From Phyllobates terribilis (Eukaryota): 64,000 nucleotides of DNA. The stretch is from the NCBI RefSeq assembly GCF_046119375.1, contig NW_027362761.1, positions 889,638,001 through 889,702,000 on the forward strand, read 5' to 3'. Below are positions 5,040 through 62,357 of this stretch, in pieces. Both the position numbers and the translations under genes were made by a program. Position 1 is the first letter of the stretch; each line of letters begins with the position of its first letter. The notes beneath the pieces were generated by a model. That model was not told the DNA's origin. It saw only the letters and a program-made list of their open reading frames with translations, and ran no database searches.

Positions 5040-5189
5040 CTGAGGCAAAATTTTTAAAACAGACTGGGGTTTCAAGGTATACTGATCAGGCTCTTTTCAA
5101 GGAGTGCCATAAAAAATGGGTAATGTGGAGGACCATAGATGCAGTTGTTGGTCAAGGAAACTTAGTGCAGCAGGTGAAAGACACATCAT
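5040..5189 (+). mobile_element. Tc1 transposase fragment, left part of the element split by the outer hAT
   Basis: Reads GNVEDHRCSCWSRKLSAAGERHI, the GRPRK-type region of a Tc1 paired domain. It continues in frame at 61620. Confidence 0.8.
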
Positions 5190-5568
5190 TATGAGCAAGC
5201 ATGCTCGGCCATGCTCGGTACACGATCGAGCATCGGGGTGCTCGGGCATGCTTTGTACTCAATTGACTATCCCTGGTGCTCGTGCACATGCTCGTATCCC
5301 CGCCACACATGTTTTTCAGCTGTTTTTCTGCCACCATGTTGGCTACTGGCATTATTGTGTTTGGCTGGCGGCATGTCTATATAAAACCTGGTGACGCGAC
5401 ACTCACCACACTGTAGCCAGAATTACTGCTGGGAGAACTGCTGGAGAAGGGCTAGTAGTGTATTACCAGCCTTGCTGCAGAAGAAAAAAATTAAACTCCT
5501 TATCAGGCATATATCTATTCTATTCTAGCTCTTATTAATACCATTCTTAACTGCAGACCTAATTTAAT

Positions 5569-6916
5569 ATGCACAAGACATGTGGTAAGGGATGGGGAGG
5601 TGGACGTGCTGCTGCTGATGGTGCACGCCGAGGTCACGGTGAAACTGTGCCTGCTGTGGGAGCACAACAAACAGGTTCATCCATGTCACCTACATAGTTT
5701 CCAGTCCCACTTTGCAGGGGGGCACGGGACACCACTCTTAAAGCCAAAACAGTGCAAACAGGTGGTCGGTTGGATAGCAGATAATGCTTCCAGCTTGTTT
5801 CACAGCACCATCCTGTCTGCTGCATGGTCCAGCCTCACTAGCCAAGATTCTGGACCACATAATCCAGACCCGCATCCTCCTTCCTCCCTCCATGGCGATC
5901 CCACACTTGGACACTCCAAGGAGCTCTTTACATTTCCTGAAGACAAGAGTGGGGAATGGCAATTAGTGTCTCAAGTGGTAGGTGATGATGAGTCACAATT
6001 GCCAACAAGTCATGTTGTTAAGTCAACAAGTCAGGAGGAGAACCAGAGTGCGGAATTGGAAGACAAGGTGGTGGATGATGAAGTCTCTGACCCAACCTGG
6101 CAAGGTGTCATGCAGAGCAATGCCAGCAGCTCAGGGGGGAGGAATCTACAGCACCGCAACATGCAGGCAGAGGAAGTGGGGTGGCCAGAGGGAGAAGGCG
6201 GGCAAATGTTCCCCAGAACACCCACATGTGGTTAAATCCCAGGGTAGGTATTCCCCAATCTGGAGCTTTTTTACAAACAGTGCAGAAGACAAGAAAATGG
6301 TTATTTTCAACCTGTGCTGTACCAAGATCAGCAGGGTCCTGACCACTACCAGCCTAACCACCACCAGCATGCTCAGGCACGTCATCAAAGCACCCGACTA
6401 GGTGGGCCGAACACCTGGGTTTACAATAAGTGTTTACCGGTGACACCACTGCCTCTTCCCCTGTGCTATGTGCTTTCCAATCCCCTGTTCAGGACTCAGA
6501 CACGTATCCCTCCCGCCCTACACATGTCACTGCACATTCGCAACTACGATCATTAACCATGGCCATTCATCCATCATTGTCACAGCACAGCATTCAGCTG
6601 TCCTTACCCCAGGCTTTTGAACTCAAGTGGAAACACGTAGCTAACCACTCACAGGCCCAAATGCTAACCGGACACTTTTCCAGACTGCTTGTCCTGGTAA
6701 TGTTGCCATTTAGGCTTGTGGACACTGAGGCTTTCCACAACCTCATTGCGGCGGCCGTCCCATGGTACTCGCTCCCCAGCCACCACTATTTCTCCCGGTG
6801 TGCCATCTCCGCATTACACAAGAAGCACGTGTCTCATACACATCTCCCATGCCTTGACCAACACAGTTACTGGGAAGGTCCACTTAACCACCGACACATG
6901 GACAAGTGCTTGTGGC
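5569..6916 (+). pseudogene. hAT transposase N-terminal half (outer element), frameshifted
   Basis: RG-rich start, acidic region, BED-like WSFF..CCTKISR..TTTSMLRH, LPFRLVDTEAF..PSHHYF, and KVHLTTDTWTSACG (first catalytic D). Confidence 0.85.
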
Positions 6917-7144
6917 TAGAAACGAGCGAATGTTGCAATATTCGGTTTGGATTACGATCGTCAAATTTGCAATATTCGCTGATTTATTTGTCGAATATTC
7001 CTCGAACATTGCCAAATGCCATTGGATTCAATGGGGGGCAAAAAGAAACGCATACACCTTAAAATGGGCCCAAAAGCTGTCAAAACACATCAAATTAGGA
7101 GCAGACACCTGGAAAGTGCCATCAATTGACCCAGAGTAAAAGTA

Positions 7145-8368
7145 CTATAATTATTATTTATTATTATAGCGACATTTATTCCATGGCGTTCTACATTTGA
7201 AAAGGGGTCACCGACTGGTACAAGAGGAGAGAGGACCCTGCCTGCGAGGGCGCACAAACAATCTACAAGGGATGGGTGAGGATACAGTAGGTCAGGGTAC
7301 AGCTGGTCGTGCAGTGGTATGCTAGAGCGAGGGTTACCGCAGATTGTACGCTTGTCACAAGAAGTGGGTTTTCAGCTTCCTTTTCAAGGTTTCCAAGGTA
7401 GGCGAGAGTCTGATGTGTTGTGATACAGAGTTACACAGTAGGGGAGAAGCACGGGACAAATCTTGTATGTGATTTTTGCAAGAAGAGATAACAGTGAAGT
7501 AGAGAAGGAGATCTTGGAAGGATGGAAGATTTTGTGCAGGTAAGTACAGGAGACTAGGTCACACAAGTATGGAGGAAACAGATTTCCAATGGCTTGGTAT
7601 GCCAAAGTTAGCTTTCTAAATGGAGTCTCTGGGCAATGGGGAGCCAGGGCAGGGATTGACAGAGAGACGGGAGAAGCCGGGGAATAGTGGGGTGACAGTG
7701 GATTCGTCGGCCAGCACAGTTTAGGACAGATTAGAGGGGTTCAAGAGTGGTAGAAAGGAGGTCATAGAGGAGGAGCTTGCAGTAGTCGAGGCGGGAGTGG
7801 ATGAAGGCATGCACTGGTGTTTCTGTCGATTCTTGGTTGAGGAATGTGCGGATACCAGAGATATTTTGGAGTTGGAGTCAGTAGCAAGTGGAAAGGGCTT
7901 GGATCTGACGTTTAAAGGACAGATCATAATGGGCAGCCATTTACTTTGATGGATAGGTTGGACCGGTGAATGAGATGGAGGAAAGATGATAAATTCGGTT
8001 TTATTCATGTTAAGTTTTACAAATCTAGCAGAGAGGAAATATGAAATAGTGGACACACATTGTGGGATTCTGGTTAGTAAGGAGGTGATATCAGGTCCAG
8101 AGAGGTAGATCTGTGTGTCATTAGCATAGAGGTGATACTGAAAGCCGTGAGACTCTACAAGCTGTCCCAGGCCGAAGGTGTAGATGGAGAAGAGCTGGGG
8201 TCCTTGAACTGAATGTTGAGGGATACTGAATGTCTGGTCAGTTAGGTATGATGAGACAGCGTTATGCATTGTAGATGAGGGCCAGAAAGAACATGTTCTC
8301 CAGTAGATGACAAGCGCTGCATCAAGTGGCCTCTGATCCTCATCCTCAACCTTAACATTGCACACAGT
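7145..8368 (-). mobile_element. L2-type LINE 3' fragment
   Basis: RT motifs [33 protein letters not shown], and a TAA-rich tail at 7145-7170. Confidence 0.8.
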
Positions 8369-8669
8369 ACAGTCCTCAGAGGTGGCACCCTAATTACCCT
8401 TGTTTTCCCTCACGTCACAACTCTCCAACCACCCAACTGACTGTGGGGAAACACAGATAGGCGAGTCTGCAGAGCTGTTCACACATTCTATTCCGGGGCA
8501 TCAAAGGTCTAATCCAAAGCTTTACAGACTCAAGAGGGGGAAAGCATGTGTAGCGATGCCCAAAATTTTTTTCCGTTAATCCGGGCCAAGATGAAGTAGG
8601 GTCTGAGCAAAATCCAAACTCTCGTCACCAGATGTTAATCCCTGGGGGTGGGCATGGATGTGTTTGAGA

Positions 8670-9060
8670 ACGAAACAAATACACAGCAGAACATGGAGAA
8701 CTAAACGAATATACAACAGGGGTTGGAAAACTAAACTACTAAACAGCTAGGCTTGGAGAACTAAACTACTACACACCAGGGAATACAGAACTAAACCACT
8801 TGACACCAGAAGATGGAGAAACAAACTAATAGACAACAGGGGTTGGAGAACTAAACTACCAAACAGCTAAGGTTGGAGAATATAAGAAATACACACCAGA
8901 ACATGGAAAACTAAGCTAATAGAAAACAGGGAATGGAGAACGAAACTAATAGACAACAGGTGTTGGAAAATGAAACTACTAAATAGCTAGGGTTGGAGAA
9001 CTAAGCTACTACACACCAGGGGATTGAGAAGTAAACCACTAGACACCAAGGTGTCACTAG
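8670..9060. repeat. About 30-bp degenerate minisatellite, about 13 copies
   Basis: Recurring TGGAGAACTAAACTACTAxACAxCAGGGGT unit. Confidence 0.8.
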
Positions 9061-10049
9061 ACAGCAAGTGTTGGAATCCCAAGGCTTGTGGGACAAATAT
9101 CTGTATCTAACACTTCTTTCAGTGTTTCTGCCTCCTCCATCTCCTCAAGGGCCTCCACCTGCACCCTCAACCTCTATGTGTTTCAACAGTGGAAATAGAA
9201 TCCCCCCCACCTCCATACCAGCCAGGGCTCACCGCAATCAGGCAGTGTTAATATTAATATGACTTGGAGATCGCTGTCATACAGCTGAAGAGTTGTGGAC
9301 AGCTCTCCAGGCTGAGTTTGAGCAATGGCTGTCTCCACTGAACTTGGAGCAAGTCAAGGCTGAGTGCAATAATGGTGCAAACCTGGTGGCGGCCCAGCGC
9401 CGGGCAAACTCACACACGTGCCTTACATGGCTCGCACCCTCAACCTGACAGTACAGCAATTTCACGGCTACTATCCCGGCCTGGATGCACTGCTGCAGAA
9501 ACCACGGTCTCTGTGTGCTCACTTAATATAAGAATAGCAGGATCTTTAGTATAAAAAACAGATTCGCCAATGTAACCTCTTAATCCTTGCAAGCTTCAAC
9601 ACAATGTTCACAAGGTAGACAGCAACAGTGGTCAGTCCTCTAGACAACGAGCAAACTCCTTCATGATGATAGAGGTCACCATCTCCTTAGCTTGCTGCTG
9701 GTACTTTTCTGTGGGAATGAGCTTTTCTCAAACCACCCAAGAATATCCAGTGAATGGCACGCCATGGTTTGGTATTAGCACCCAGTACCGGAAGCGAAGC
9801 CATGCACAATTTCCATATCTCAGGAATTTTATTTGGTACACTGGCTGGCCAAACATTAGTTTCTCACAAAGGAACTGTAGACACTTAGTGGTAGTAAGTG
9901 CAAGTTTCTCCAGCATAAGCTGTATGTTATTGTTAGATATCAGAGGGAGAGGGAGAACAAAATTGGACCTTACCAAGGTGCCATATTGCATCTTAAGTCT
10001 TATAGACCCTGCCTTTGCGGGCTTACATGCTACAGGATGGTGGGGAAGG

Positions 10050-10425
10050 ACACAGTAGGTTGTGGAATTTCAGTAGCTCCAGTGGTGTTGAGGTGGCATT
10101 GAGGTAATGGCAGGCTGTAGGCTGTCTTGAAGAGATGGGCTTCAGGTTCCATCTGAAAGATCCGAATGTGGTGGCTAATCGGATGTATTGAGGCACAGAA
10201 TTCCAAAAGATGGGGGATATTTGGTAGAAGTCTTAGAGGCGATTGGGTGAGAAACGAATAAGTGTGGAGTAGAGAAAGAGGTCTTGGAAGGACCGGAGAT
10301 TACGTAAGGGAATATATCGGCAGATTAGTTCACAGAGAAAGGTTATCAATGGCTTTTTTAGGCCAGTGTTAGGAGTTTGAACTGGATACACTGGGCAATT
10401 GGGAGCCAGTGAAGAGATCTTATAG
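10050..10425 (-). mobile_element. L2-type LINE ORF2 C-terminal fragment
   Basis: The minus strand reads LHWLPIAQCIQFKLLTLA, a typical L2 ORF2 C-terminal motif. Confidence 0.7.
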
Positions 10426-10901
10426 ATTGCAATCGTATAGATTGCTGGAGCCAGTGAACAGTAAAAAAGCAGCCATAGAGTGTCCGGGAACCTTCACATA
10501 GACTTTTCTTAGCTAGGGCTGCTTCTCAGCAGGGTTGGCATGGCTTATCAGAGAACCGGAGACTTCTCCGGTGGGCCCTGGCTTCTCTTTCAGGAGAGTT
10601 TAAAATGCAAACCTTGCAGGTTGTGATGATGATAGAGGCCACCATCTCCTTAGCTTGCTGCAGGTACTTTTCTGTGTCTCCAACCTTGTCTGGAATATTT
10701 CCAGTGAATTATGGCATGCCATGGTATTAGCAGTGCACGCATTATCAGAAACAAAGCCATCCACAATTTTCTTCTCAGGAATTTTATTTGGTAGACAGAG
10801 TAGCTTCCCAAACATTAGTTTCTCACAAAGGAGCTGAAGATACTGAGTGGCAGTAGGTGCAAGTTTCTCCAGCATGTTAGATATCAGAGGGAGAACAGAG
10901 A

Positions 10902-11045
10902 GGGCTTCATGGTGGCTTGGTGGTTAGCACTGCAGCCTTGCACCCTGGGGTCCTGGGTTCAACTCCCACCAAGGACAACATCTGCAATGAGTTTGTATGT
11001 TCTTCCTGTGTTTGCAGGATGTTCTCCAGTTTCCTCCTCCCTTAA
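10902..11045 (+). mobile_element. tRNA-derived SINE head with V-SINE-like core
   Basis: A box TGGCTTGGTGG (10913-10923) and B box GGTTCAACTCC (10956-10966), followed by ACATCTGCAATGAGTTTGTATGTTCTTCCTGTGTTTGC..GTTTCCTCC. Confidence 0.75.
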
Positions 11046-11339
11046 AAAGCACCCATACATTGTCTGGGAACCTTCACACAGACTTTTCTTTGCCAGGCCT
11101 GCTTCTCGGCAGGGTTGGACAGAGAACCAGAGACTCCTCCAGTGGGCCCTGCCTTCCTCTTCAGGAGAGTTCATAGTGCAAAGCTTGCAGCATAAATCAA
11201 ATCCTCTTGTGGGCCCAGTGCTCTTTAGTCTGACACTGCTTCTCTTGTTTTTCACCACTGCCTTATTTCAGCTCTGTGAAAGGACTGGAATAGAGGGAAA
11301 CCGTATTTACTCCGGCTGTCATTTCTCCTAGGAAAGTCC

Positions 11340-13410
11340 TCTAATGCAGCTTGAAAATAGCAATGACAGCCCATCCAACATCAGCTCACACTTCTCGGTG
11401 GTGCTTCGACACACAAAGATCTTTCTTTGCGTCTTGAATTTCATGACTACAGAGTTGGGAAATGGCCTGATCTGCAATGTATTTTGAGAAATAGTGTGCA
11501 TAAGCAAAGCCACAGTTTAGGCCACTGAAGGTCATCATTAAGCAAAACTCATACAGCTTTCCCACAGACTGAAAGAAGGATATCAAGACTTCCAAGACAG
11601 CCAACATTTCCCTATCCTCACCATGAGGACCACTGTCCATGTTAGCCTCCTGCTCATTATCACCCAATCTGCATTGAGATGAGATGAGGCTGGTCTGTGT
11701 AGCATCATCCTGTATAGTTCCTTGCTCCGCCTGCAATGCTTCCTCTTTAATTGTGAGCAGCGAGCATTTCAGTAGATAGAGAAGTGGGATGGTGATGCTA
11801 ATTATGGCGTTATCACCACTCACCATCTTGGTGGAGTCCTCAAAGTTTTGGAGGACAACACAGATGTCTGACATCTATGCCCACTCATCAGAAGTTATGT
11901 GCAAAGGCTGACCTGAATTCCAACTGGCGTGTTGAAGCTGGTACTCAACAACTGTGCTCTGCTGGTCACAAATCATTCCCAACATCTGCAACATTGGTTT
12001 TCCAATGTGTGGTCACATCACACACCAGTCGGTGAGCTGGAAGCTGAAAATGCTGCTGAAGCACTGCCAAGGTGGCAGAAGCTGTAGCTGATTTTATGAA
12101 ATGAGCATCTGGGTAGGTTTTGAGAAACCGCTGAACCATTAAGTTGAGCACATTTAGTGCTCTCTCATTACTAGTGTGTACCCCTGTATGGAGAACAATA
12201 ATAGCACCAAAGAATTAAAAGATAAAAGGTAGCCTGCTTTATATACCACGGTACTAAGAAAAACAATTTTGATTATATCATGTGTACCCCTGTGACAACA
12301 ATATGTGCACCAAAGAATTATTTTCAATAGAGTAGAACTAGTATAATGGGGATCGACAACTCTTCCACTACAGCCAACCCAGTAGATGGGACAAAACCAG
12401 GAGTGTTCGCATTTCAAAAAATTAGAGCCTGACACCACCGTTTCTGTGGCCAACAGATTGGAGATGGCGGAGTTCAATCTCTTAGCTTTGTCATGTGTAG
12501 GAGGAAACAATCTTTTACGTGTCCTCAACTACAGGACCGAGGGATGGCTGCAGCACTGAGAGAGGGCGGAGTACGGTGAACCGGACAAACTGCAGGACCG
12601 TGAGTGAGGTGCAGGTGGAGATGTTACAGTGGATTGAGAAACATGTGGTGCGCTCGGTAAAACAAACACAGCAGGCATGTTTGCTTCTATTACAGCTGAC
12701 AGGCTCCCACTCAGCCTGACTGGAGCAGGGAAAGAACTGGAGGTTCGCAGGTCGGAGACCTGTGTGACAATGCTTGGCACGATAACAGAGAAGGAGGAAG
12801 AAGCAGCAGATGTGTTTGATGGGGCGGCTGATGGTTGTTGAGGTCCACTGGTCCGCATTTTATCGTAGAGAGATTGCTAGTGTAAAGCATGTTGATTGCG
12901 TATGTGAAGGTTCCTGCATGTAGTAGTCAAATTATTGGACTTTTTCCCTCTACTGAGTTTTTTCTTGCAAAGTTTGCAGATAACGTGAGTTGGCTTATCC
13001 TTTGCGGTCTCAAAAAAGGCCCAGGCTAGGCAATCCTTGCTGCCCCTGCGTGCTGCAGACCCATGACCACTGCTGGCCACAGCCACAGTTGTGGCTAAGG
13101 ATGCAGTGCTCATCGCGAATGCATCACTCCGTGGCTGCGAGGTAGCATGCAACATAACCTCCTTGTCTTCTTCCTCCTTCAACTCCTCAGATTAGCTACT
13201 CAGCTGTGTGCCTCTGGGTTAACACCAAGTGGGATCCCCAACCTCATCATCATCCAATGTGTTATCCCATTCCACGCCTTGAGAGTCACCCTCCTCCTCT
13301 TCTTGCCCTGACAGCACAATAAAGTCCGTGTGACCCTCAGGTATCTGAGTCTCATCAGGATCACTTCCCACCAGGGGTTAACGTCTGGTGACGTGTGTCC
13401 GGAAGCTGCT
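11340..13410 (-). pseudogene. hAT transposase fragments (acidic N-terminus, BED finger, catalytic core)
   Basis: LAWAFF..CKLCKKKLSRG..LHIRNQH; KAKRLNSAISNLLATE; HRLVCDVTTHW; [21 protein letters not shown]. Confidence 0.85.
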
Positions 13411-13559
13411 CGGACCCAACTTTTTTCTTACCTGTATGAAGAAAAGTATTTAACACAAAGAATTTGATGCTGAGATGTAGTCTGCTTGATATACCAATTT
13501 TGAGTTTATCATGTCTGTGTACCCATGTGTGTAGAACAACATCTGCCGCAAAGAATTCA

Positions 13560-14600
13560 TTTCAGTAGCGTAGAACTATTATAATGGGGACCGACACCTC
13601 CCCCACTACAGCCAACTAAGCAGATGGAGACACAATCAGGAAAGTTAACATTTAAAAAAATTAGAGCCTAACACCACCAAAGTGGCATCAATTTCATTAG
13701 AGTAGAAGAAGTATAATGGGGACCGACACTTCTTCCACTACAGCTAACCCTGCAGATGGAAACTCAATCAGAAGTGTTCACATTTAAAACAATTAGGGCC
13801 TAACACCACCAAAGTGACATCAATTTCACTATCGTAGAAATAGTATAATGTAGACCAAAACCTCTTCCACTACAGCCAGCCCAGCGGATGGAAACTCAAT
13901 CAGGAGTGTTCACATTTTAAAAAATTAGGGCCTAGCACCAAAAAAGTGGCATCAATTTTACTAGACTAGAAGTAGTATAATCGGGAACGACACTTCTTCA
14001 ACTACAGCCAGCCCAGCAGATGGAGACACAATCAGGAGTGTTCACGTTTGAAAAAAATAGGGCCTATGACCATCAAAGTGGCATCAATTTCATTAAAGTA
14101 GAAGTATAATGTAGACCAAAACCTCTTCTACTACAGCCAACCCAGCAGATGGAGACTCAATCAGGAATGTTCACATTTAAAATAATTAGGGCCTAACACC
14201 AACAAAGTGGCATCAATTTCATCAGAGTAGAAGTAGCATAATGGGGACTGACAACTCTTCCACTACAGCCAACCCAGTAGACGGAGACCCAATCAGGAGT
14301 ATTCACATTTAAAAAATTAGGGCCTAACACCTCCTTTTCCCTGGCCAACATATTGGGGATGGTGGAATTCAATCTTTTAGCTTTGCCATGTGTTGGATGA
14401 AACAATCTTTTACGTGACCACAACTACGGGACCGAGGGTGGGCTGCAGTGCTGAGAGAGGGTGGAGTACTTTGAACAGGACAAACTGCATCAATTTCACT
14501 AGAGTAGAAGTAGTATAATGGAGACCAAAACCTCTTCCACTACAGCCAATCCAGCAGATGGAGACACAATCAGGACTGTTCACATTTTAAAAAAATTGTG
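13560..14600. repeat. 132-bp tandem array (about 6 contiguous units plus displaced units near 12320-12440 and 14480-14600)
   Basis: The ATAATG anchor recurs at 13581, 13713, 13845 and 13977. Confidence 0.9.
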
Positions 14601-14706
14601 TTAACAACTGCAGCAGCAGCAAGAGCAGGCACAGAAGCCACGCTAAAGAAATCACAGACTGCAATTACGCGAGATCAATGCAGCACACTAAATACTACAA
14701 CATCGC

Positions 14707-15629
14707 CTAGTGTGTACAGTCTGTGATTGGGGTGCAAAAGTCCTTGGAGATCCATGACTTGTTCATCTTGATGAAAGTTAGGCAGCCTACACTTTGTGGG
14801 GACAGCCGGCTGCGCTTATCTGTCAGGACACCATCAGCAGTGCTGAAGACACGTTCTGAGAGAATGCTGGCTGCCGGGCATGATAAAACCTCCAAGGCGT
14901 GACAGGCAAGCTCAGGCCACTCATCCATTTTTGAAGACCAAAATGTCAAAGGGTCCATACCCTCCCTTATGGTATTGATATTGAGTTCTAGATACTTCTG
15001 CACCATCCTCCCCAATTGTTCATCATGTGTTAGACTTGTACTCTTTTTAGCTGATGCACGAGCTGGTCTAAAAAATGTGTGAAAGGACTCACAGAAATTG
15101 CTTCTGTCACTTACATTGCTGCTGCTGCTAATATTTTGGCGTTGACAAATTGACGTGCCGAGGTTAGAAGTGTAGAGCTGCTATGCACACTGTGTGCCTC
15201 ACTGCTATCTTGGGGGACACCTATCTTAAGGTTGTGCAAAAGCTTGTTTCGGTACTCCAGCATTCACGGGTCCCTTTCCAGGGCAGGAAGCATCTGGTAA
15301 AATTTACTCTTATAAAGTGGATGTAACAGAGTGGCAACCCAGTAGTCAGCACTATTTTGAATCATAACTATACGGGAATCATGTTGTAGATAGTGCAGCA
15401 ATAAGACACTCATATGTTTGGCTCTTCCATGAGTTTCAAGCACGTGCTGTGTTGGTGGCTGGGTAACTCTGATGATTGTTTTCTCCGTCCCCTCCCGCCA
15501 AACATGAACAGAGAGGAGATGATTATCCTCTTCCTCCTCCATTTGTTCTTTGCCTCTGGCACCTTCACTAACAGTTTGTCTGGCATCACCAACCCCCCTC
15601 GATTGCGTTGACCCACTCTCCCTTGGCAC
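14707..15629 (-). pseudogene. hAT transposase C-terminal fragments including the dimerisation domain
   Basis: DYWVATLLHP.YKSKF and FWSSKMDEWPELA..LSCPAASILSERVFS..LTFIKMNKSW. Confidence 0.85.
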
Positions 15630-16822: not shown

Positions 16823-16924
16823 CTACAGGTGGTGTAGCTTGCTTAACAGCCGGGATAATCCGCTGACTAGCAGACACTGCTACTAGGCACAAAGTATTTC
16901 CTGGGCTAGATGCAGTTAAAAATT

Positions 16925-18750: not shown

Positions 18751-18826
18751 ACAGACCACGGTTGGCAAGTTAGAACTGTAAGATTCACTACGTGAACCAC
18801 TGGTGTTTTGTGGAAAAGCACATGTA

Positions 18827-50241: not shown

Positions 50242-51430
50242 TATTGGCAAGGATTTGTGAGCATCAGAGAACAGTAATTGAATGCTAGCTACAACATGCC
50301 CATTTGTATTCCGTTCAGCCTCCGCACATAAGATCCGTAGAGTGGGCATGGATGTCTGACATCTGTGTGGTTCTCCAAAACTTTGAGAAATCAACAAGGT
50401 GGTGAGCAACGATGACACCATAATCAGCGTAACCATCTCACTTCTGTGTTTACTCAAACGCTCCCTGCTCACAATGAAAGAGGAATGCTGACCAGGTGGA
50501 GTTGAAGGAAGAAAATACACAGGGTGATACTATCCAGGCCAGCCTCATCTCATCTTCTCAGTGCGGATTGGGTAATAATGAGGAGAAGGAGGAGAAGGAA
50601 CAGGAGATGGTTGCCTGCACTGTAGAGGGTACTACCAACAACAGCTTCTCGTCTATTCAACGTGGATGGCCTGAAGAGTAGGAGCAGAAGGAGGAGGAGA
50701 AGGAGAGTCATGCTCCTCATGGGGAAAGAGAATTCTTGCCTGTTGGGAGTCTGACAGGCATGGTTGACTTAATGTACAGCGGCCTTTCCAGTGACACTCG
50801 TGTTATACACATTTTGACCAATACTGATTACTGGCTGTTCACTCTTCTCAACTCACGCTAAAAGAAGAACTTTTCATCTCTCCTACCTACTGTGGAGAGG
50901 GTCAGTAAAATGGTGCAATATCAGAAGGCCCTAGTTGAACAATTAGTCAAAAAATTTTCATCTGACAATTCTGGCTGCAGGAGTCAAAGTTCTTTGTGCA
51001 ACCAAGGAGTTGAGATGAGGGAGACACACTCCAGATCCAGCAGAGGCATGGTGAACTCTATCAAAGGTCTGGGACAATTTCATTAGACTATCCCAGCACC
51101 TATGCCCTGATGTGTGGGTGCTGGAAACGTTTTGGAAGATGGAGAAGGAGTACCTAGCCGACCCTACCAGCATCCTCCGTGATTCTTTTGTGCTGTACAA
51201 TTATTGGATATCCGAGCTGGATACCAAGCATGAACTGTCCCTCTACGCCTTTGAGGTGATTGCGTGCCCTACATCTAGGGTTTTGTGTAAGCGTGTCCTT
51301 AGTGCTGCCGGTTGCATAATTAGTAATAGGCGCTTCTGCCTGTCAACTGAAAATACTGACAGGCTGATTCCTATCAAAATGAACAAGGCCTGGATTGACC
51401 TAGACTTCTCAACCCCACCGGATGACAGCA
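50242..51430 (+). pseudogene. hAT transposase C-terminal half (right part of the outer element)
   Basis: RICEH.., ISVTISLLCLLKRSLL, DYWLFTLL, YWISELD..LYAFEVIACP..KMNKAW. Confidence 0.85.
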
Positions 51431-51665
51431 GCAGAACAAAAAGTCAGTTAAAGTGTTCCTTTTTTTCTGCTGTATTTCCATGCGCCACTTCCCACCCATA
51501 CAAGGGTATACGGTTCTTGTTTTCTAATTTTTCGTGTCCTCCTCTTCCACTACAGGGTCATAATTTGACCCTCGATCTTAATTTTTCCAGGGTGTGTATG
51601 ATACCCTAATACATAATTTTTTCAGGATGCGCATGAGGCCTACCTCTATAATTCTCTTACATATA

Positions 51666-53260
51666 CATTGAGGAAAATAAGTATTTGATACACTGCCAAT
51701 TTTGCAAGTTTTCTCATCTAGAATGGACAGGTCTGTAATTTTTATTGCAGATACACTTCAACTGTGAGAGACAGAATCTAAAAAAATCCAGAAAATCACA
51801 TTGTATGATTCTTACATAATGAAATTGCATTTTATTTCATGAAAAAAGTATTTGATCACCTACCAACCAACAAGAATTCTGGCTCTCACAGGCCTGTTAG
51901 TTTTTCTTTAAGAAGCCCTACTACTCTGTACTCATTATCTGTATTAATTGCTCCTGTTTGAACTCATTACCTGTATAAAAGGCACCTGTCCACACACTCA
52001 ATCAATCACACAACAACCTCTCCACCATGGCCAAGACCAAAGAGCTGCCTAACGACACCAGAGACAAAATTATAGACCTGCACAAAGCTGGAATGGGCTA
52101 CAGGACAGTAGACAAGAAACTTGTTAAGAAGGCAAAAATTGTTGGCGCAATTATTATAAAATGGAAGAAACACAAGATGACTGTCAATCTTCCTCGGTCT
52201 GGGGCTTCATGCAAGATCTCACCTCGTGGGGTAAGGATGATTCTGAGAAAGGTCAGGAATCAGCCCAGAACTGGAAGATGTGAGCAAAGACCTGAAGAGC
52301 GCTGGGACCACAGTCTCAAACATTACTGTTAGTAAAACACTCTTTCGTCATGGATTAAAATCCTGCAGGGCATGCAAGGTCCCCCTGCTCACGCCAGCAC
52401 ATGTCCAGGCCTGTTTAAAATTTGCCAATGACCATCTGGATGATCCAGAGGAGGCATGGGAGAAGTTCAAGTGGTCAGATGAGACCAAAATAGTACTTTT
52501 TGGTATCAACTCTACTCACAGTGTTTAGAGGAGGAAGAATGATGAGTACAACCCAAAGAACACCATCCCAACTGTGAAGCATGGTGGGGGAGGCATTATA
52601 CTTTTGAGGTGCTTTTCTGCAAAGGGGACAGGGCGACTGCATTATATTGAAGGGAGGATGGAGGATGGGGTCATGTATGGCGAGATTTTGGCAAACAACC
52701 TCCTTCCCTCAGTAAGAGCATTGAAGATGGGTCGTGGCTGGGTCTTCCAGCATTACAATGACCCGAAACACACAGCCAAAGCAACTAAGAAGTGGCTCCA
52801 TAAGAAGCATTTCAAGGTCCTGGAGTGGCCTAGCTAGTCTCCAGACCTGAATCCAATAGAAAATCTTTGGAGGAAGCTGAAACTCAATGTTGCTCAGCGA
52901 CAGCCCTGAAACCTGAAAGGTCTGATGAAGATGTGTTTGGAGGAGTGAGCCAAAATCCCTCCTGCAATGTGTGAAAACTTGGTCAAGAACTACAGGAAAT
53001 GTCTGACCTCTGTGATTGCAAACAAAGGCTTCAATACAAATATTAAGTTCTGTTTTTCTATTGTATCAAATGCTTATTTTGTGCAATAAAATGCAAATTA
53101 ATTATGTAAAAGTCATACAATGTGATTTTCTGGATTTTTTTTAAGATTTTGCCTCTCACAGTTGAAGTGTACCTACATTAAAAATTACAGACATCTCCAT
53201 TCTTAGTAGGTGAGAAAACTTGCAAAATCAGCAGTGTATCAAATACTTATTTCCCCTCTG
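51666..53260 (+). mobile_element. Full-length Tc1 element (about 1.6 kb, long TIRs), decayed ORF
   Basis: TA|CATTGAGGAAAATAAGTATTTGATACACTGC ... GCAGTGTATCAAATACTTATTTCCCCTCTG|TA; MAKTKEL.., [23 protein letters not shown]. Confidence 0.92.
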
Positions 53261-54995
53261 TATATATATGTATACCCCTCCAGGGGTAAATGTTTTAGCC
53301 CTTACACTTAGTGCATTGGCTTTACCTGTCTAGGAGTCCCACTCCTTCCAAATAGTAAAAAAAAATTTTCTGAGGCTCTACTCTGCATGTCTTACATGGT
53401 GTAATGGAGTGCCTCCTTCTAATTTTTGGAAGCTCTTGTACATAGTACATGTGCTTTACCACTCTAGGAGTACCACTCCTTTAATAATGGGGAAAAAATG
53501 TTTTCTGAGGCCCTCCTCTGCACATCTTCCAGGGGGTATTGCAGTCCCTCCTTCTAATTTTTGGCAGACCTTGCACTTAATGTATAGGCTTTACCAGTGT
53601 AGGAGTCCCACTCTTTATTAAATTGTCAAAAAATGTGTTCTGAGGCCCTCCTCTACATCTCTTCCAGGGTGTATGGATTAAAATCCTGCAGGGCATGCAA
53701 GGTCCCCCTGCTCACGCCAGCACATGTCCAGGCCTGTTTAAAATTTGCCAATGACCATCTGGATGATCCAGAGGAGGCATAGGAGAAGTTCAAGTGGTCA
53801 GATGAGACCAAAATAGTACTTTTTGGTATCAACTCTACTCACAGTGTTTAGAGGAGGAAGAATGATGAGTACAACCCAAAGAACACCATCCCAACTGTGA
53901 AGCATGGTGGGGGAGGCATTATACTTTTGAGGTGCTTTTCTGCAAAGGGGACAGGGCGACTGCATTATATTGAAGGGAGGATGGAGGATGGGGTCATGTA
54001 TGGCGAGATTTTGGCAAACAACCTCCTTCCCTCAGTAAGAGCATTGAAGATGGGTCGTGGCTGGGTCTTCCAGCATTACAATGACCCGAAACACACAGCC
54101 AAAGCAACTAAGAAGTGGCTCCATAAGAAGCATTTCAAGGTCCTGGAGTGGCCTAGCTAGTCTCCAGACCTGAATCCAATAGAAAATCTTTGGAGGAAGC
54201 TGAAACTCAATGTTGCTCAGCGACAGCCCTGAAACCTGAAAGGTCTGATGAAGATGTGTTTGGAGGAGTGAGCCAAAATCCCTCCTGCAGTGTGTGAAAA
54301 CTTGGTCAAGAACTACAGGAAATGTCTGACCTCTGTGATTGCAAACAAAGGCTTCAATACAAATATTAAGTTCTGTTTTTCTATTGTATCAAATGCTTAT
54401 TTTGTGCAATAAAATGCAAATTAATTATGTAAAAGTCATACAATGTGATTTTCTGGATTTTTTTTAAGATTTTGCCTCTCACAGTTGAAGTGTACCTACA
54501 TTAAAAATTACAGACATCTCCATTCTTAGTAGGTGAGAAAACTTGCAAAATCAGCAGTGTATCAAATACTTATTTCCCCTCTGTATATATATGTATACCC
54601 CTCCAGGGGTAAATGTTTTAGCCCTTACACTTAGTGCATTGGCTTTACCTGTCTAGGAGTCCCACTCCTTCCAAATAGTAAAAAAAAATTTTCTGAGGCT
54701 CTACTCTGCATGTCTTACATGGTGTAATGGAGTGCCTCCTTCTAATTTTTGGAAGCTCTTGTACATAGTACATGTGCTTTACCACTCTAGGAGTACCACT
54801 CCTTTAATAATGGGGAAAAAATGTTTTCTGAGGCCCTCCTCTGCACATCTTCCAGGGGGTATTGCAGTCCCTCCTTCTAATTTTTGGCAGACCTTGCACT
54901 TAATGTATAGGCTTTACCAGTGTAGGAGTCCCACTCTTTATTAAATTGTCAAAAAATGTGTTCTGAGGCCCTCCTCTACATCTCTTCCAGGGTGT
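52350..54995. repeat. 1323-bp tandem duplication (52350-53672 / 53673-54995)
   Basis: Identical ORF pairs are offset by 1323. Only two differences were noticed by eye. AT microhomology at the junction. Confidence 0.95.
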
Positions 54996-55760
54996 ATTGC
55001 AATCCCTTCTTTACATTTTTGCTAGGCCTTGCACCATGTGCATAGGCATTAGCAGTGTAGGAGTCCCACTGCTTTTAAAATTCTCTCTCTGGACATGAAT
55101 CTCAGAGAAAATAGCCATGGACAGTGACTCACTACACACTTCCTGCGCACGTAAGTCCTCCTCTTCCAGGGTCAGTCTGCTGATGCTGCCAGTCACTCTC
55201 TTCAACTGAACTGCTCTCACCCTCTGCTCTTCACTAGTTACATTGAATATGGCCTTCTCCATCCCATCATTGTTGTGAGATATTTCTTCAATTTTTATTA
55301 CAGCAATGGTGGTAAGATGTTCACTTCCCACATAATTTTCACTCAGCACATCAACAACTTTAGTTTCATTCAAGTCATATTCTTGCTTTTTCCCATCTTG
55401 TTCTATTTCTCTTTGTCTCTTGTCGGTGTCATCTGATGGAAATGAAAGTTCCTTCTGGTCACATAAATCTCTTGCACAGTCCACAACATGATAGCTTCTT
55501 TCCATGAATTCATTGACAAATTTTGTCTCTTTGTACAATCTTTTCTTAAGGCTTTGAACTTGGTGCATAGGCTTTACCAGTATAGGAGTCCCACTGTTTT
55601 AAAAATTCTTAAAAAATTTATTCTGAAGCGATCCTCTACCTGTCTTCCAGGGTGTATTGCAGTCCTTCCTTCTAATTTTTGGCAGCTCTTGCACTTGGTG
55701 CATATACTTTATGATTCTAGGAGTCCCACTACCTAACAATTTTAGGAGAATGTTTATGAG
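53265..55760. repeat. Degenerate ~134-bp array in the 3' arm of the outer hAT (interrupted)
   Basis: GGAGT(C/A)CCACT anchor at 53333, 53467 and 53602, with further units up to about 55740. Confidence 0.8.
55078..55545 (-). other. Unassigned E/K/D-rich open frame inserted between array units
   Basis: About 155 uninterrupted codons in AT-rich DNA that does not resemble the flanking repeat. No family recognised. Confidence 0.4.
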
Positions 55761-55984
55761 GCAAATGAATGCAATGAGAGAATGCAAAAATGGATCAAAA
55801 ACGCTATTTGTGAACATAGCCTAAGTGGTTGAGGAGGCATTTTTTTTGCTCTCTTTTTTTAAAATTTGTCTTATATGCATGTAATTATAAAGGAAATAAT
55901 GTTTCCTAACATATTTTTCTGTAAAATCCATTTTATCTTTGGTTTTGAATGTTCTATCGTCACTCCATAAAAGTGGCGCAATAC

Positions 55985-57066
55985 TGTAAGGTGCCCCAGC
56001 GAGGTAGTCGTGGGCGAGCTGTAGCCCCCTCTCGCTATGGCACCCTACAGACAATACGTGTCCTCCCTCTGAAGTGTGGCTGTGTATGTAGTGCTCTTCA
56101 CTTACTTCAAGCCATCCGATCGCGGCTGTCTCCAGGCAATTTTCTTCTGGGACCAGGGCAGCAATAATTTCAGAGGACACGAGGTTCTTAACCAGAACTT
56201 GGACTTTACTTGGGGAAGAGGAGTATATACAATATTTACAGTCAGATATAATGGATAAGGCCCGACAGGCAATCATCTCTCTCACATGCGCTGTTAACTG
56301 CTTCAGCCCTGGTTCCCTCTTTAAGCGGAGCATCTCTGTGGCTATAATCCCTGGCCCAAGAGAGTCCTCTGTATTGACAGTGACCTGGATCTGATATCTC
56401 TCCCCCACGTCTTAGCCTGGAGTCCTATTTAGCTTCCTCTGCTTCCTGCAGACTAGAAGTGCACCGTGTCCTCAGTACGCTTTGATGAGTTTCTCCGGTG
56501 GGCTGACAGGACTCGTGCTCTTGTGTGGGGAGACTTGCACTGGGATCCCACTGTCTGAGGGTGCGGAGCTCCTGTCTACCCTAGCAGCCACTATAATCAG
56601 GCTGTCTGAACAACTTGCAGTCTCAACTCGTACTGAAGAATCACTTCCTGATTCTGGAAACTAAACAGAGACTTTCCTAATATGCCCACCCTCAGTGAGC
56701 TGTCATCACAGAACTTTAACCCATCACTGTTTATAACTTTGCTGGCAGACTCAACCTGACATCTGCACCCAGTACAGTGGCATCTTGTGGCTGTTTTCAG
56801 GTACTGCAGCCCAGAAGGAATTATACCAGGAACAAGCTTTATATCTCTCTAGACTTGATAAGGGCACTAAGTTCCCCCTCTACTCTACTAACTGGACCAC
56901 TAAAGCTAACCCCCTTAGCTTGGTCTACCACAGAGAGGGAGGTCTGACCTCAGGGACACTTCCTTTAACTATCTCAGTACCAAGGGAAGGCTACGCCCTT
57001 CCCCACTATTACAATACTCTGACAACATTGTTCCCAGTAGCAACCTGCGAGTCAGAGTTGTATACA
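55985..57066. mobile_element. Possible LTR-like insertion
   Basis: Begins TGTAAGGTGCCCC and is compositionally distinct from its flanks. No TSD or matching end confirmed. Confidence 0.3.
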
Positions 57067-57188
57067 GGCATCTTCCTCATGTTGTTCTTATTCTATTTGA
57101 ATCATAGAATCATAGAATCATAGAATGGTAGAGTTGGAAGGGACCTCCTGGGTCATCTGGTCCAACCCCCTGCTCAAAGCAGGATTCA

Positions 57189-59978
57189 CTAGATCATCTC
57201 AGACAGATGTCTGTCCAGCCTCTGTTTGAAGACGTCTATTGAAGGGGAACTCACCACCTCTAGTGGCAGCCTGTTCCACTCATTAATCACCCTAACTGTC
57301 AAAAAGTTTTTTCTAATATCTAATCTGTGTCTCCTCCCATTTAGTTTCATCCCATTGCTTCTAGTCTTTCCTTGTGCAAATGAGAATAAAGATGATCCTT
57401 CTACAATGTGACAGCCCTTGACATATTTGTAGACAGCTATTAAGTCTCCTCTCAGTCTTCTTTTTTGCAAGCTAAACATTCCCAAATCCTGCAACCGTTC
57501 CTCATAGGACATGGTTTGCAGACCAGTCATCATTCTGGTCGCTCTTCTCTGAACTTGCTCCAGTTTGTCTATGTCTTTTTTAAAATGTGGTGCCCAAAAC
57601 TGTACACAGTATTCCAGATGAGGTCTGACCAAAGAGGAGTAAAGACCGATAATGACTTCACGTGATCTAGACTGTATGCTTCTGTTAATACATCCCAGAA
57701 TTGTATTTGCCTTTTTTGCTGCTGCATCACACTGTTGACTCATGTTCAGTCTATGATCTATTAGTATACCTAAGTCTTTTTCACATGTACTGTTGCTTAG
57801 CTCTATTCCTCCCATTCTGTATATGCTTTTTTCATTTTTATTGCCCAGATGTAGTACTTTGCATTTTTCCCTGTTAAAAACCATTCTGTTGGTTGCTGCC
57901 CACTGCTCCAGTTTATTTAGGTCTTTTTGAATCCTCTCTCTCTCTTCTCTAGTATTAGCTATACCTCCTAGCTTTGTGTCATCAGCAAATTTAATCAGTT
58001 TACCCTCAATTCCTTCATCTAAATCATTGATAAAGATGTTGAACAATACAGGTCCCAGGACGGAGCCCTGTGGTACCCCAATTGAGACATTCATCCAGCT
58101 GGATGTGAAGCCATTTACAACCACCCTTTGAGTCCGATCACTAAGCCAGTTATGAATCCACCTAACAGTTGCCTGGTCCATTGCATACTTGGTCATTTTT
58201 TCAATAAGGATGGTGTGAGATACTTTGTCAAATGCTTTGCTGAAGTCAAGATATACTATATCTACAGCATTTCCCTGATCTACCCAGTCAGTGGTTATGT
58301 CATAGAAGGAAATTAAGTTAGTCTGACATGACTTGTTAGTTACAAACCCTTGCTGACTCTGGTTAATCACTTCATTCTTATCCATGTACTTACATACATG
58401 TTGTTTAATAATTTGTTCAAAGATCTTTCCTGGTATAGAAGTCAGACTCACCGGCCTATAGTTCCCTGGGTCCACCTTCTTCCCCTTTTTGAAGATAGGA
58501 ACAACATTTGCTCTTCTCCGGTCTTCTGGGACTTCTCCTGTTATCCAAGAATTTTCAAAGATTATGGAGAGTGGTTCTAAAATTTCTTCTACGATCTCCT
58601 TCAGTACTCTGGGGTGTAATTCATCTGGACCTGGAGACTTGAACTCATTTATGTTAACTAAATATTCCCTCACAATCTTTCTGTTTACAGATAACTTGGA
58701 TTCCTCTATTCCTTTAAAAGGACAGTGAAGATCAGTTGATGTTACATTTTCTTTCTGAGAGAAAACAGATGCAAAATAGGAATTAAAAAGTTTGGCCTTC
58801 TCAACACCCTCTCTTACCATTTCTCCATTTTCATCCTGTAAAAATCCTATAGCATCTTTGACTTTTCTTTTACTTTTGACATACCCCCAAAATCCTTTTT
58901 TATTGCTTTTGACATCTCTTGCAAGCCTTAATTCATTGTCAGCTTTAGCTAACCTGATACGTGCCCTGCAGGATCTGCAGACTGCACTATAATCTTCTTT
59001 AGATATGCCTCCCTCTTTCCATTTAATAAACATTTCTTTCTTTCTTTTTAGCATGTGTTCAAGTTCTGTGTTCATCCATCCTGGTTTCCTTAAATGCTAC
59101 CCATTCTTCCTACTTTTCGGGATTGTTAACGATTGTGCTTTGAGAATCTCATTTTTAAAAATTTTCCATCCTTCCTGGACATTTTTGTCCTTAAGGACAT
59201 CCAGCCATTGGATCCCTCCTATTCTCTTTCTGAGTCTCTTAAAATCTGCCTTTCTAAAATCTAACCTTGAAGTTTGAGTCTTCACATGTCTTCCTCCTCT
59301 AGTTATCCAAAATTCTATAATAGCATGATCGCTGCCTCCTAGGGTCCCAGCCACCTTTACCTCCTCAACCATTTCCTCCCTGTTTATAAGGATTAGATCC
59401 AAAGTAGCAGATCCCCTTGTTTTCTCCCCTACCTTTTGGAAGATAAAGTTGTCAGCAAGAGAGGATAAGAATTTGCTTGACCTGTTAGTTTTACTTGAGA
59501 GAGATTCCCAACAAATGTCTGGATAGTTGAAATCTCCCATGACCACTACGTCATATTTTTTGGAGAACCTGGTGATTTGATACATAAAGAGTTCATCCAT
59601 ATCTTCAGCTTGCCCAGGTGGCCTGTAGTAAATGCCTACAATGGTGTCCTTTCCGTTGTTCTCTCCTTGTATTCTTACCCAAACAGTTTCCACAGAACTC
59701 CCAGTCTCTGAAGCTTCAATCTCTGTGCAGATATTCGCTTTTCTAACATACAATGCAACACCTCCTCCTCGTTTATCAAGTCTGTTTCTTGCAAATAAGT
59801 TGTATCCTTTTAGCCTTTTATTCCAATCATGTGTATCATCCCACCAAGTTTCAGTGATTCCAATGACATCATATTCCTTTTCCTGCATTAGTAGTTCCAA
59901 TTCTCCTTGTTTGTTGCCCATGCTTTGTGCATTTGTATAAAAACATTTTAGTTTGTGATTGGTTTCTCTTCCTCCCAT
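57189..59978 (-). pseudogene. CR1 ORF2 (APE endonuclease + RT) with one in-frame TAG at 59097-59099
   Basis: YTNAQS..ETWW..GDFN..SDH; YRPVSL, DFSKAFD, PQGS, FADD. The two ORFs are in frame, seven codons apart. Confidence 0.93.
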
Positions 59979-60100
59979 ATTTTTATTATTTAAATTGTTT
60001 TGTCTTTGTTCTTCCTTTCCACTTCCAGTAGCAGAGATCTCAATAGTATTTGTCAGCTGTATGGCTTTTTCTGGCCTTTTGCTTCCCTTCCCACATTGTT

Positions 60101-61063
60101 CTAGTTTAAAGCTCTTCTGATGAGTGTAGCAAGGCGACTTCCAAATACATGTTTTCCAGTCTTCGTAAGGTGCACCCCATCTCTAGCAAGTAGTCCATCG
60201 TATAGGTAATTCATTCCGTGATCCAGAAATCCAAATCCTTGTTGACGGCACCATCGACGTAGCCAGTTGTTCACCTGTAGAATCTTATTCCACCTCATTG
60301 TTCCATGGCCATCCACTGGGAGGATGGATGAGAAGACCACCTGCGCTCCCAATTCTTTCACTTTCTTGCCTAAGTCTTCAAAGTCACTGCAGATGGTTTC
60401 CAGGTCCTTTCTTGCGGTGTCATTTGTCCCCACATGTATTAGCAGGAATGGGTAGTGATCTGTAGGTCTGAAGAGTCTTGATATCCTGTCAGACACATCT
60501 TTAATTTTTGCTCCTGGAAGACAGCACATTTCTCTTGAGGTTATGTCTGGTCTGCAGATAGCGGCCTCTGTTCCTCTTAACAGGGAATCCCCCATGACCA
60601 CCACTCTCCGTTTTTTCTTCACAACATTCTTCTTTCTCCATCCAGGAGGATTCTGAGGGCTTACAAGGTTATTCATTGCTGGCAAAGTCTTATTTTGCTG
60701 TATTTCTTCATGGTTCTCCTGCGTGAGAGCCTGGTTCTGGTTCCTGAGCAGTATGGGTGCTGACTGCCTCTCGATCCTCCTGCTTCTGTGGGTCACATGC
60801 TTCCATTCCTCTGTTTCGTCAGGTGCAGTTCGAATTTCTTCTCTTTCTGAATCATGAAGAGATAATTCTGCTCTGTCTAAGAACTCTTCACCTTCCTTAA
60901 TGATTTTCAAGGTAGTTAACCTCTCTTCTAGATTTCGCAACTTTTCCTCCAACAGGGACACAAGCTTGCATTTCTGGCATGTGAAGTTTGGCTTTTCCAC
61001 TGGCAAGTCTGTGAACATGTAGCAGGATATGCAGCTCACCAAATGGCTCCTGTACTCTTCCAT
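60101..61063 (-). CDS. CR1 ORF1p (Cys-rich N-terminus, coiled coil, SGNH esterase), intact, 320 aa
   Basis: CISC..CQKC, GDSLLRG, HVGTND, DGVHL. Confidence 0.92.
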   Translation of the reverse strand: MEEYRSHLVSCISCYMFTDLPVEKPNFTCQKCKLVSLLEEKLRNLEERLTTLKIIKEGEEFLDRAELSLHDSEREEIRTAPDETEEWKHVTHRSRRIERQSAPILLRNQNQALTQENHEEIQQNKTLPAMNNLVSPQNPPGWRKKNVVKKKRRVVVMGDSLLRGTEAAICRPDITSREMCCLPGAKIKDVSDRISRLFRPTDHYPFLLIHVGTNDTARKDLETICSDFEDLGKKVKELGAQVVFSSILPVDGHGTMRWNKILQVNNWLRRWCRQQGFGFLDHGMNYLYDGLLARDGVHLTKTGKHVFGSRLATLIRRALN

Positions 61064-61121
61064 GTTCTTATTGTTAATGTTCTGAAAACAGTGAAAAAAG
61101 CTTAAAAAAAAGCTTCAAAAT

Positions 61122-61428
61122 GAATATGCAAATTATCTCCTCAGGACTCCTCCCCTGGTTTACCAATGTCCTCTTTTCAGCTCCAACAGCCAAAATCCAG
61201 TGTTCTTTGAGCTCGCGGAGACTCTTCACTTACCCCAAAATGCAGTGGGAATATGCAAATTATCTCCTCAGGACTCCTCCCCTGGTTTACCGATGTCCTC
61301 TTTTCAGCTCCAACAGCCAAAATCCAGTGTTCTTTGAGCTCGCGGAGACTCTTCACTTACCCCAAAATGCAGTGGGAATATGCAAATTATCTCCTCAGGA
61401 CTCCTCCCCTGGTTTACCGATGTCCTTG
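61122..61428. repeat. 127-bp 5' UTR monomers (about 2.4 copies) of the CR1
   Basis: GAATATGCAAAT anchor at 61122, 61249 and 61376. Confidence 0.92.
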
Positions 61429-61619
61429 AGTGCTGTTTACATCCATTTCAGCTATTTTCCTGCCCCCCAGCCTCCGGGTAGGGTCTGTTGGAAAAATGCT
61501 TGCGTTTCCCATTGACTTCCAATATACTCGTTACTCCAAGCGAGTGTGAGTGTCCGCCCTGCTCGATTCGAGTACAAAGCACTTGAGCATTTTAGTGCTC
61601 GCTCATCACTATACATCAT

Positions 61620-62353: not shown

Positions 62354-62357
<4 letters not shown>

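Follow-up and report, generated by a model that had tools for sequence, protein, structure and literature searches.

The stretch of DNA analysed here (the window) comprises 64,000 nucleotides from the genome of the frog Phyllobates terribilis (contig NW_027362761.1, positions 889,638,001 to 889,702,000 of the forward strand; coordinates below are those of the window). A single ancient hAT transposon, named P1, bounds 56.4 kb of this window and lies within the remnant of a Tc1 element, named T0. Direct evidence for this comes from the ends and their target duplications, from the empty sites restored by excision and from the collinearity of P1 with a sister copy. Judged from the sequence, P1 was very probably swollen by later insertions, with one or several deletions and a duplication, a history that would reflect the general transposon load of a dendrobatid-type genome. 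The locus is a coordinate-level worked example of how DNA transposons, besides long terminal repeat (LTR) elements, inflate a giant amphibian genome, in this case from 10 kb to 56 kb.

The outer hAT element and its Tc1 host

The left flank reads GAAAGA followed by CACATCAT (5182-5189), and P1 starts at 5190 with TA followed by TGAGCAAGCATGCTCGG. The right terminus ends in GCTCGCTCATCACTA at 61611 and TACATCAT (61612-61619) follows directly, which gives P1 a span of 5190-61611 (56,422 bp). The two flanking copies form an 8-bp target site duplication of the hAT type and agree at 7/8 bases; by our own calculation, the probability of a match of at least 7/8 between random 8-mers is about 4e-4. Short terminal inverted repeats (TIRs) of hAT elements follow a YARNG consensus. 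The TIRs of P1 are of this type, with TAGTGATGAGCGAGC on the right and TA, a four-nucleotide gap and TGAGCAAGC on the left, as are both ends of the sister copy P3 (TAGTGTTGAGCGA). Alignment of the ends reveals that the left TIR of P1 lacks four nucleotides (GTGA/GTGT) which its own right end and both P3 ends possess. Apart from this gap the left end represents the 5'-type subterminal sequence of the family, with 76% identity to P3 in an alignment of 55 nt. The 3'-type signature GAGCACTAAAAT is found at the right end, and the 5'-type and 3'-type ends are correctly oriented to each other. A preliminary description of the window had placed the left end at 5190 with a four-nucleotide deletion and the right end at 61611 between flanking target copies, 56,422 bp apart, and all of this is borne out.

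T0 is found on the plus strand on both sides of P1. Its left portion (4990-5189) ends in CACATCAT, while the right portion (61612-62100) consists of the target copy TACATCAT and the continuation of the decayed remnant. Upon removal of 5190-61619 in silico the frame KLSAAGERHI continues directly into ILTSFGNQMFSSAISSEL, so that the exact joining of a Tc1 frame across 56,422 bp, as described before, was reproduced. Pfam gave no Tc1 match with the joined peptide or with the T0 pieces, a word-index search with the joined peptide of 91 residues gave no match, and comparison of the joined flank with the Tc1 proteins of the window itself (tblastn/Smith-Waterman) was collinear and non-significant (score reached by 19/200 shuffles). 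Since the flanks of T0 are too decayed, and Pfam and the Tc1 proteins in the window too distant, external paralogues were therefore sought by phmmer against 1.84 billion proteins, with the open piece of the right flank (61793-62056) as query. The matches are predicted proteins of other decayed copies of the Tc1 family of T0 (P0019-P0023), and through them Tc1-type transposase homology of T0 is established without a direct Pfam match (E down to 4.7e-20). P0023, in which Pfam detects PF01498 (HTH_Tnp_Tc3_2), aligns with the joined flank in one high-scoring segment pair (joined nt 131-715, E 4.7e-20) that is ungapped across the junction. P0021 and P0022 cross the junction as well. In the unexcised controls every paralogue match ends at the hAT boundary; matches of P0020, P0021 and P0023 stop at 5188/5189, which sets the limit of the left portion of T0. 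On the DNA level the paralogues L001 and L002 are collinear across the join with 66-67% identity and show CACATCAA at the target site. The excised flanks are thus collinear with Tc1 homologues, both in the ungapped protein alignment and in DNA, as the preliminary description had anticipated. Its view of the host as a Tc1 gene did not hold. T0 is a badly decayed, internally deleted and truncated Tc1 remnant and no gene; comparison of 4300-5189 with 61620-64000 revealed no inverted repeat, and neither TIRs nor bordering TA were detected there.

That the two outer ends belong to one element follows from the comparison of P1 with P3. As a reference (P3ref, 9,773 bp) we used P3 minus its gypsy insert, and the length of this reference agrees with the former estimate of roughly 10 kb for the original element. 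Seven blocks of P1 are collinear with P3ref: 5192-5246 (P3ref 7-61), 5729-5898 (2458-2636), 6028-6924 (2853-3772), 50241-51524 (4416-5737), the arrays at 53300-55076 (about 7116-7338), 55766-55984 (9292-9503) and 61492-61611 (9651-9773). The own DNA of P1 amounts to about 5.1 kb or 9% of the span; the remaining 91% is later or foreign material. It is distributed over four parts, all on the plus strand. In the 5' part (5190-6916) the 5'-type end and the 5' region are followed by the N part of the transposase, which reaches as far as the TTDTWTSACG motif. The C part (50242-51665) starts at the position of P3b amino acid 284, includes the hAT dimerisation domain and runs into the beginning of the 3' region. 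The 3' region (53261-55984) includes 135-bp arrays homologous to P3 46552-46775 and a subterminal sequence (55766-55984) corresponding to P3 48728-48939, and the 3' terminus (61427-61611) is a 3'-type hAT end (TAGTGATGAGCGAGCACTAAAAT, reverse complement).

On the protein level, the N part (5576-6916) matches P3a amino acids 10-470 and P3b amino acids 7-66, with the latter match ending at 6916, and the C part (50241-51267) matches P3b amino acids 284-435 and P3c amino acids 5-185. The two parts are complementary and have zero overlap on the P3 protein, which confirms the earlier placement of an N-terminal transposase half after the left end and a C-terminal half toward the right end. The N part is homologous to P3a, the bearer of the zf-BED domain, and Pfam identifies Dimer_Tnp_hAT in the C part (51055-51606, E 1.5e-6). 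BED finger, DDE core and C-terminal hAT dimerisation domain are accordingly recognisable in a gene that is decayed: the reading frame of the N part is interrupted by stops and frameshifts, and 217 core residues are gone. In the N part, Kimura two-parameter (K2P) distances of P1 to P2 (a further sister copy) and P3 are 0.35/0.35, and in the C part they are 0.30-0.41, as compared to 0.19-0.23 between P2 and P3. Each half of P1 thus falls outside the pair of P2 and P3, and the distances are similar; given this and their complementarity, there is no sign that the halves stem from different subfamilies, an objection that the preliminary description had itself raised.

Macrotransposition of hAT elements is known in maize. 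The 56 kb might accordingly have moved as a composite by means of the ends of two P-family copies, with a nest older than its insertion into Tc1. We consider this extremely improbable, as nothing specific to the window speaks for it, the N and C parts of P1 are complementary and non-overlapping, inner ends of P1 type are absent, the guests look younger than P1 with respect to CpG decay, LTR divergence and open frames, and a late move would have been hindered by the damaged left TIR.

Nested guests and their order

The guests of P1 include three further P-family hATs (P2, P3 and M1), which substantiates the earlier notion that several inserts are from the element's own family. Besides, there are fragments and one intact copy (M2) of a second hAT family, Q, four Tc1/mariner elements, a Ty3/gypsy element, a CR1 long interspersed nuclear element (LINE) and other LINE fragments. 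Clean target duplications reveal a chain in which T0 (Tc1) contains P1 (hAT), P1 contains T-b (Tc1-like), T-b contains P3 (hAT) and P3 contains the gypsy element.

T-b (32898-50241, plus strand) consists of its own DNA at 32898-32927 and 49210-50241 and of P3 in between. Its left inverted repeat lacks the outer approximately 125 bp; its right end with TA meets P1 exactly where P2, P3 and M1 continue uninterrupted. P3 (32928-49209, plus strand) is complete at both ends and flanked by a perfect 8-bp duplication, ATAATGGC (8/8), and the long inverted repeat of T-b aligns straight over the P3 excision point. P3 contains 299-bp arrays on the 5' side and 52-bp and approximately 135-bp arrays on the 3' side. 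The best match of its transposase is a 'ZBED4-like' protein of Phyllobates terribilis with 90% identity; a Ranitomeya protein is 69% identical. Inserted in P3 is a Ty3/gypsy LTR retrotransposon with chromodomain (38106-44609, minus strand) and a 5-bp duplication, CACGC. The C part of P1 aligns uninterrupted to P3ref over the excised gypsy site. The gypsy element is nearly intact, gag being open and the pol frame being interrupted only twice; its LTRs, each with five 99-bp tandem units, are 97% identical (K2P 0.030). The 3' region of P3 also holds two reverse-oriented copies, about 300 bp each, of the N-terminal coding region of the family's transposase (47411-47804, 48332-48510), located within a repeat of about 600 bp (47010-47613 / 47931-48530). 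They may be what is left of an earlier insertion in inverted orientation, or may serve as an intrinsic source of antisense RNA.

Further to the right, T-d (51666-53260, plus strand), a Sleeping-Beauty-like Tc1 element, has TA duplications and inverted repeats of about 200 bp. A head-to-tail tandem duplication of 1,323 bp (52350-53672 = 53673-54995) covers the 3' two-thirds of T-d and about 400 bp of hAT array, with short microhomology at the joint. The two copies are 99.85% identical (2/1,325 positions differ); the duplication is either a very recent event or an assembly artefact. Between two blocks of P1 3' homology lies a segment of 1.1 kb (X, 55985-57096) that is unassigned: Pfam finds nothing in it, it is not repeated elsewhere in the window, and recognisable ends are lacking. 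Next comes the CR1-type LINE (57097-61426, minus strand), whose (CATAGAAT)n tail lies at 57103. Its frames are almost intact and encode reverse transcriptase (RT, 57192-59096), endonuclease (59100-60182), with one in-frame stop between them, and an esterase-type (GDSL/OSK-like) open reading frame 1 (ORF1, 60104-61114).

Upstream of this ORF1 an array of 127-bp units (2.4 copies, 61122-61426) adjoins the right end of P1. It was considered as hAT sequence and rejected: P3 contains no homologue of it, the identity among its units is 99% as compared to 78% in the arrays of P1 itself, and it lies directly upstream of ORF1. More likely it belongs to the 5' region of CR1, where it resembles monomeric LINE promoters. 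Of the 3' arrays that the preliminary description had seen before the right end, those at 53300-55082 are real hAT arrays, whereas the one adjoining the right end is likely that of CR1.

In the left interior, H4 (6917-7130, minus strand) is a 3'-type end (TAGAAACGAGCG...) of a Q-family hAT. It sits directly after CTTGTGGC, at the point where P3 reads on CAGGGACGG, and 6975-7084 can be aligned, in direct orientation, with 16111-16236 in the region of the M2 3' end. A search of the window found neither the other end of H4 nor a second CTTGTGGC target nor the missing segment of P1. M1 was tried as this segment in inverted form and rejected, as it overlaps the C part of P1 over P3ref 4416-4763. 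H4 is followed by a scrambled block (7131-16051) of pieces of the P and Q families in both orientations and non-collinear order, in which neither paired ends nor target duplications were found. It contains a fragment of a non-LTR RT (about 7130-8250, minus strand), a Q-family hAT fragment (8259-9525, plus strand), the internally deleted P-family hAT M1 (about 9526-12173, minus strand) with an end at 12173, a Q-family N-part, arrays and C-part in non-collinear order (E1/E2, 12174-15650, minus strand) and an unassigned remainder (15651-16051). The right flank of M1, GTGTGTAC, was rejected as a target duplication since it belongs to an array unit.

M2 (16052-27395, minus strand), a Q-family hAT, is flanked by a perfect 8-bp duplication, TTTATGGG. 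Its open frame of 1,230 codons (20529-24218; 1,226 from the first ATG) is uninterrupted. In addition there are 110-bp arrays at 24323-26478 and, in the 3' region of M2 (about 17390-20160), fragments of non-LTR RT and a mariner-like element for which no TIR pair was found. The transposase shares 40-46% identity with ZBED4/6-like proteins of frogs, and an exact look-up of the protein in a public collection found it not on record. The M2 protein aligns to Hermes and displays the conserved DDE-associated motifs TTDTWTS, D in CDNAAN, CMAHVLNL, PTRWNST and SERVFS. M2 is a candidate for a still-active autonomous hAT. T-c (27404-28850, plus strand), a Tc1 element with an open frame of 387 codons (27522-28682), adjoins P2 with its right end at about P3ref 420; its left TIR was searched for and not found. 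P2 (28861-32897, plus strand) is 78-80% identical to P3, lacks the first approximately 420 bp and the 3' terminus, and breaks off in its own 3' arrays against T-b.

Clean junctions with target duplications delimit P1 in T0, P3 in T-b, the gypsy element in P3, M2 and T-d, and for these elements both ends, a duplication and a restored host were found together, which is not the case for H4, T-b, T-c, P2, M1 and E1/E2. H4 in P1, T-b in P1 and T-c in P2 are each connected to their host by a single surviving junction. At least four layers of later insertions had been proposed in the preliminary description. Deep nesting is evident; three layers inside P1 are strictly proven (T-b, P3, gypsy), a depth of at least four being reached by containment only (P2, T-c, M2, LINE/mariner), and the interior reflects deletion, duplication and scrambling besides insertion.

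The relative ages agree with hosts being older than their guests. The observed/expected ratio of CpG rises from 0.15 in T0 and 0.33 in the open reading frame part of P1 to 0.50 in P2, 0.55 in P3 and 0.65-0.72 in the gypsy element, and the same order is fitted by the K2P of 0.030 between the gypsy LTRs, by the perfect duplication and open frame of M2, and by the near-intact frames and 99% identical 127-bp units of CR1. Three elements look recently mobile, namely M2 with its open frame of 1,226 codons and perfect duplication, the near-intact gypsy element and the near-intact CR1.

As to the history of the locus, we infer an order of events in which a BED-finger hAT of the P family, complete with about 10 kb, would have inserted once by cut-and-paste into a Tc1 copy, generating the 8-bp target duplication. 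P1 would then have become immobile, its 5' inverted repeat having lost four nucleotides and its transposase having acquired stops and a split in the catalytic core. Ordinary transposition into P1 and into its guests probably expanded P1 about tenfold in the course of a long time: a Q-family hAT end at 6917 and T-b at 50241 would have entered P1, P3 would have entered T-b and the gypsy element P3, while P2, T-c, the intact M2 with its LINE and mariner inserts, T-d and the CR1 LINE arrived elsewhere. The 650 bp of P1 that lay between the two central insertion points, and ends of neighbouring elements with them, were presumably lost through one or several deletions or rearrangements. A single deletion reaching from the 3' arrays of P2 to position 125 of T-b would explain the missing junctions on the right side. 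The recent 1.3-kb tandem duplication would have added slightly more length.

Several observations weigh against so simple a course. The target duplication of P1 is imperfect (7/8) and its left TIR damaged, about 650 bp of its transposase core (P3ref 3765-4415) are nowhere in the window, an end is missing in each of H4, T-b, T-c, P2 and M1, and general load of transposable elements (TEs) alone leaves the hAT share of about 55% unexplained. Owing to the missing ends, simple insertion is not demonstrable for much of 6917-32897. The loss of 650 bp and of element ends, the scrambling of 6917-16051 and the tandem duplication imply that one or several deletions or rearrangements, or else assembly errors, were also involved.

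In line with the latter, the interior might in part be an assembly artefact, in which misjoined repeats of the same family gave rise to junctions without duplications and to the 99.85% identical tandem duplication. The junctions at about 9525, 12173, 15650, 32897 and 6917 (partner end) do lack the expected partner sequences, the duplicate copies are almost indistinguishable, and dendrobatid genomes are reportedly difficult to assemble (PMC12208295). We nevertheless regard an artefact as unlikely, since the outer and four inner end pairs have matching duplications tens of kb apart, as hardly expected from a badly chimeric assembly, and the window contains zero N runs.

Hosts and guests in the nest alternate. 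Of the hAT insertions, four have a known target (5182, 32920, 16044), which is a Tc1-type element in two and possibly three cases. The Tc1 insertions with known target (50240, 28850, 51664) number three, and each of them is in a P-family hAT. This is a small sample, and the pattern could simply reflect the make-up of the locus at that time.

hAT excess and comparison with known transposon nests

Dendrobatid genomes measure 5-13 Gb, and Tc1, hAT, Ty3 and CR1 are among their commonest element classes (PMC11152451, PMC12208295). In the D. tinctorius assembly Tc1 accounts for 6.6%, hAT for 3.9%, Ty3/DIRS1 for 13.8% and LINEs for 7.4% (PMC11152451). Deep nests are expected in such genomes, and the sole feature of the window beyond expectation is its share of hAT sequence, about 55% as compared to about 4% genome-wide in D. 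tinctorius (PMC11152451), an excess of about 14-fold.

The preliminary description had suggested an insertion sink such as heterochromatin or a locus resembling a cluster of PIWI-interacting RNAs (piRNAs). As a specialised sink, the locus would be constitutive heterochromatin or a transposon trap producing piRNAs, in which insertions are tolerated or even selected, and this would be why one element swelled to such a size. Compatible with a sink are the 91% of later TE material in the P1 span, the lack of any host exon seen in 64 kb, and the presence of the young, near-intact M2, gypsy and CR1 elements beside very old ones. In addition, hAT-Ac, Ty3 and CR1 are enriched in B compartments of Xenopus tropicalis (PMC10794172), so that the classes found here are those enriched there. 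However, the TE sense strands are balanced (about 29 kb plus and about 27 kb minus, or about 52:48 according to the parts list), and the strand bias of TE fragments that marks a one-strand piRNA cluster was not found. In a genome consisting mostly of repeats new insertions mostly strike older repeats anyway, and the window was chosen for being striking. On balance a specialised sink seems improbable to us, and we treat the sink or piRNA idea as a hypothesis.

Linked transposition, as well as deletions and inversions through alternative transposition, is established for Ac/Ds. Local hopping or a target preference of hATs could likewise have gathered the P and Q copies, and aberrant (alternative) transposition could have produced the truncated ends, the loss of 650 bp and the scrambled block. 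Within 56 kb there are four pieces of the P family and at least five of the Q family; these numbers and the hAT excess over the 3.9% in D. tinctorius (PMC11152451) speak for such a process, and the hAT ends of H4 (6917) and M1 (12173) adjoin unrelated DNA while their partner ends are missing. But the P copies are 20-35% apart and hence not recent siblings, their tree, ((P2,P3),P1), is equally compatible with independent arrivals, and no breakpoint signature of alternative transposition was demonstrated at this locus. We hold local hopping to be possible, if rather doubtful, as the origin of the locus. For the presence of own-family guests it is as plausible as a sink, the divergence of 20-35% leaving the clustering as the support of either. 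A more far-reaching version, in which both frog hAT families, by local hopping or a target preference, insert preferentially near or into their own kind and into Tc1, giving rise to hAT islands, scrambling by aberrant transposition and possibly a germline source of small RNAs, appears still less probable.

A general TE load rather than a specialised locus is what we infer for the 56 kb bounded by P1. As in other transposon nests of large genomes, such as the intergenic nests of maize and heterochromatic TE nests, and as in structures of the kind reconstructed by TEnest and TE-greedy-nester, elements lie within elements, each clean layer has its own duplication, its removal restores the host, and hosts are older than guests. 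Instead of stacked LTR retrotransposons, hAT and Tc1 elements alternate here as host and guest, and part of the nest is scrambled or deleted. A dense graveyard of TE fragments from many families, including young copies, is likewise found in Drosophila piRNA clusters (flamenco, 42AB), whereas the P1 nest lacks the strand bias of one-strand clusters. The P1 nest is an ordinary, well-resolvable transposon nest of a giant, repeat-filled frog genome and raises no new question.

The hAT elements of the window share with the BED-finger hATs (Ac/Charlie-like; 'ZBED4-like / ZBED6-like' in frogs) the 8-bp duplications, the TAGTG start of the TIR, the BED finger, the Hermes-like DDE core and the C-terminal hAT dimerisation domain. 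They differ from these in their great length of about 10-11 kb, in the tandem arrays on both sides of the gene and in an open frame of 1,226 codons with an N-terminal extension of about 300 residues.

Outside P1, minus-strand frames in the left flank (1132-4867) give a weak hint of RNase H only. A fragment of a Sleeping-Beauty-like Tc1 family (84% identity to T-d) lies in the same flank at 271-753, and the right flank holds a subterminal Q-family hAT fragment at 62464-62520 (89% identity to 27315-27371, reversed). The window outside P1 is TE debris too.

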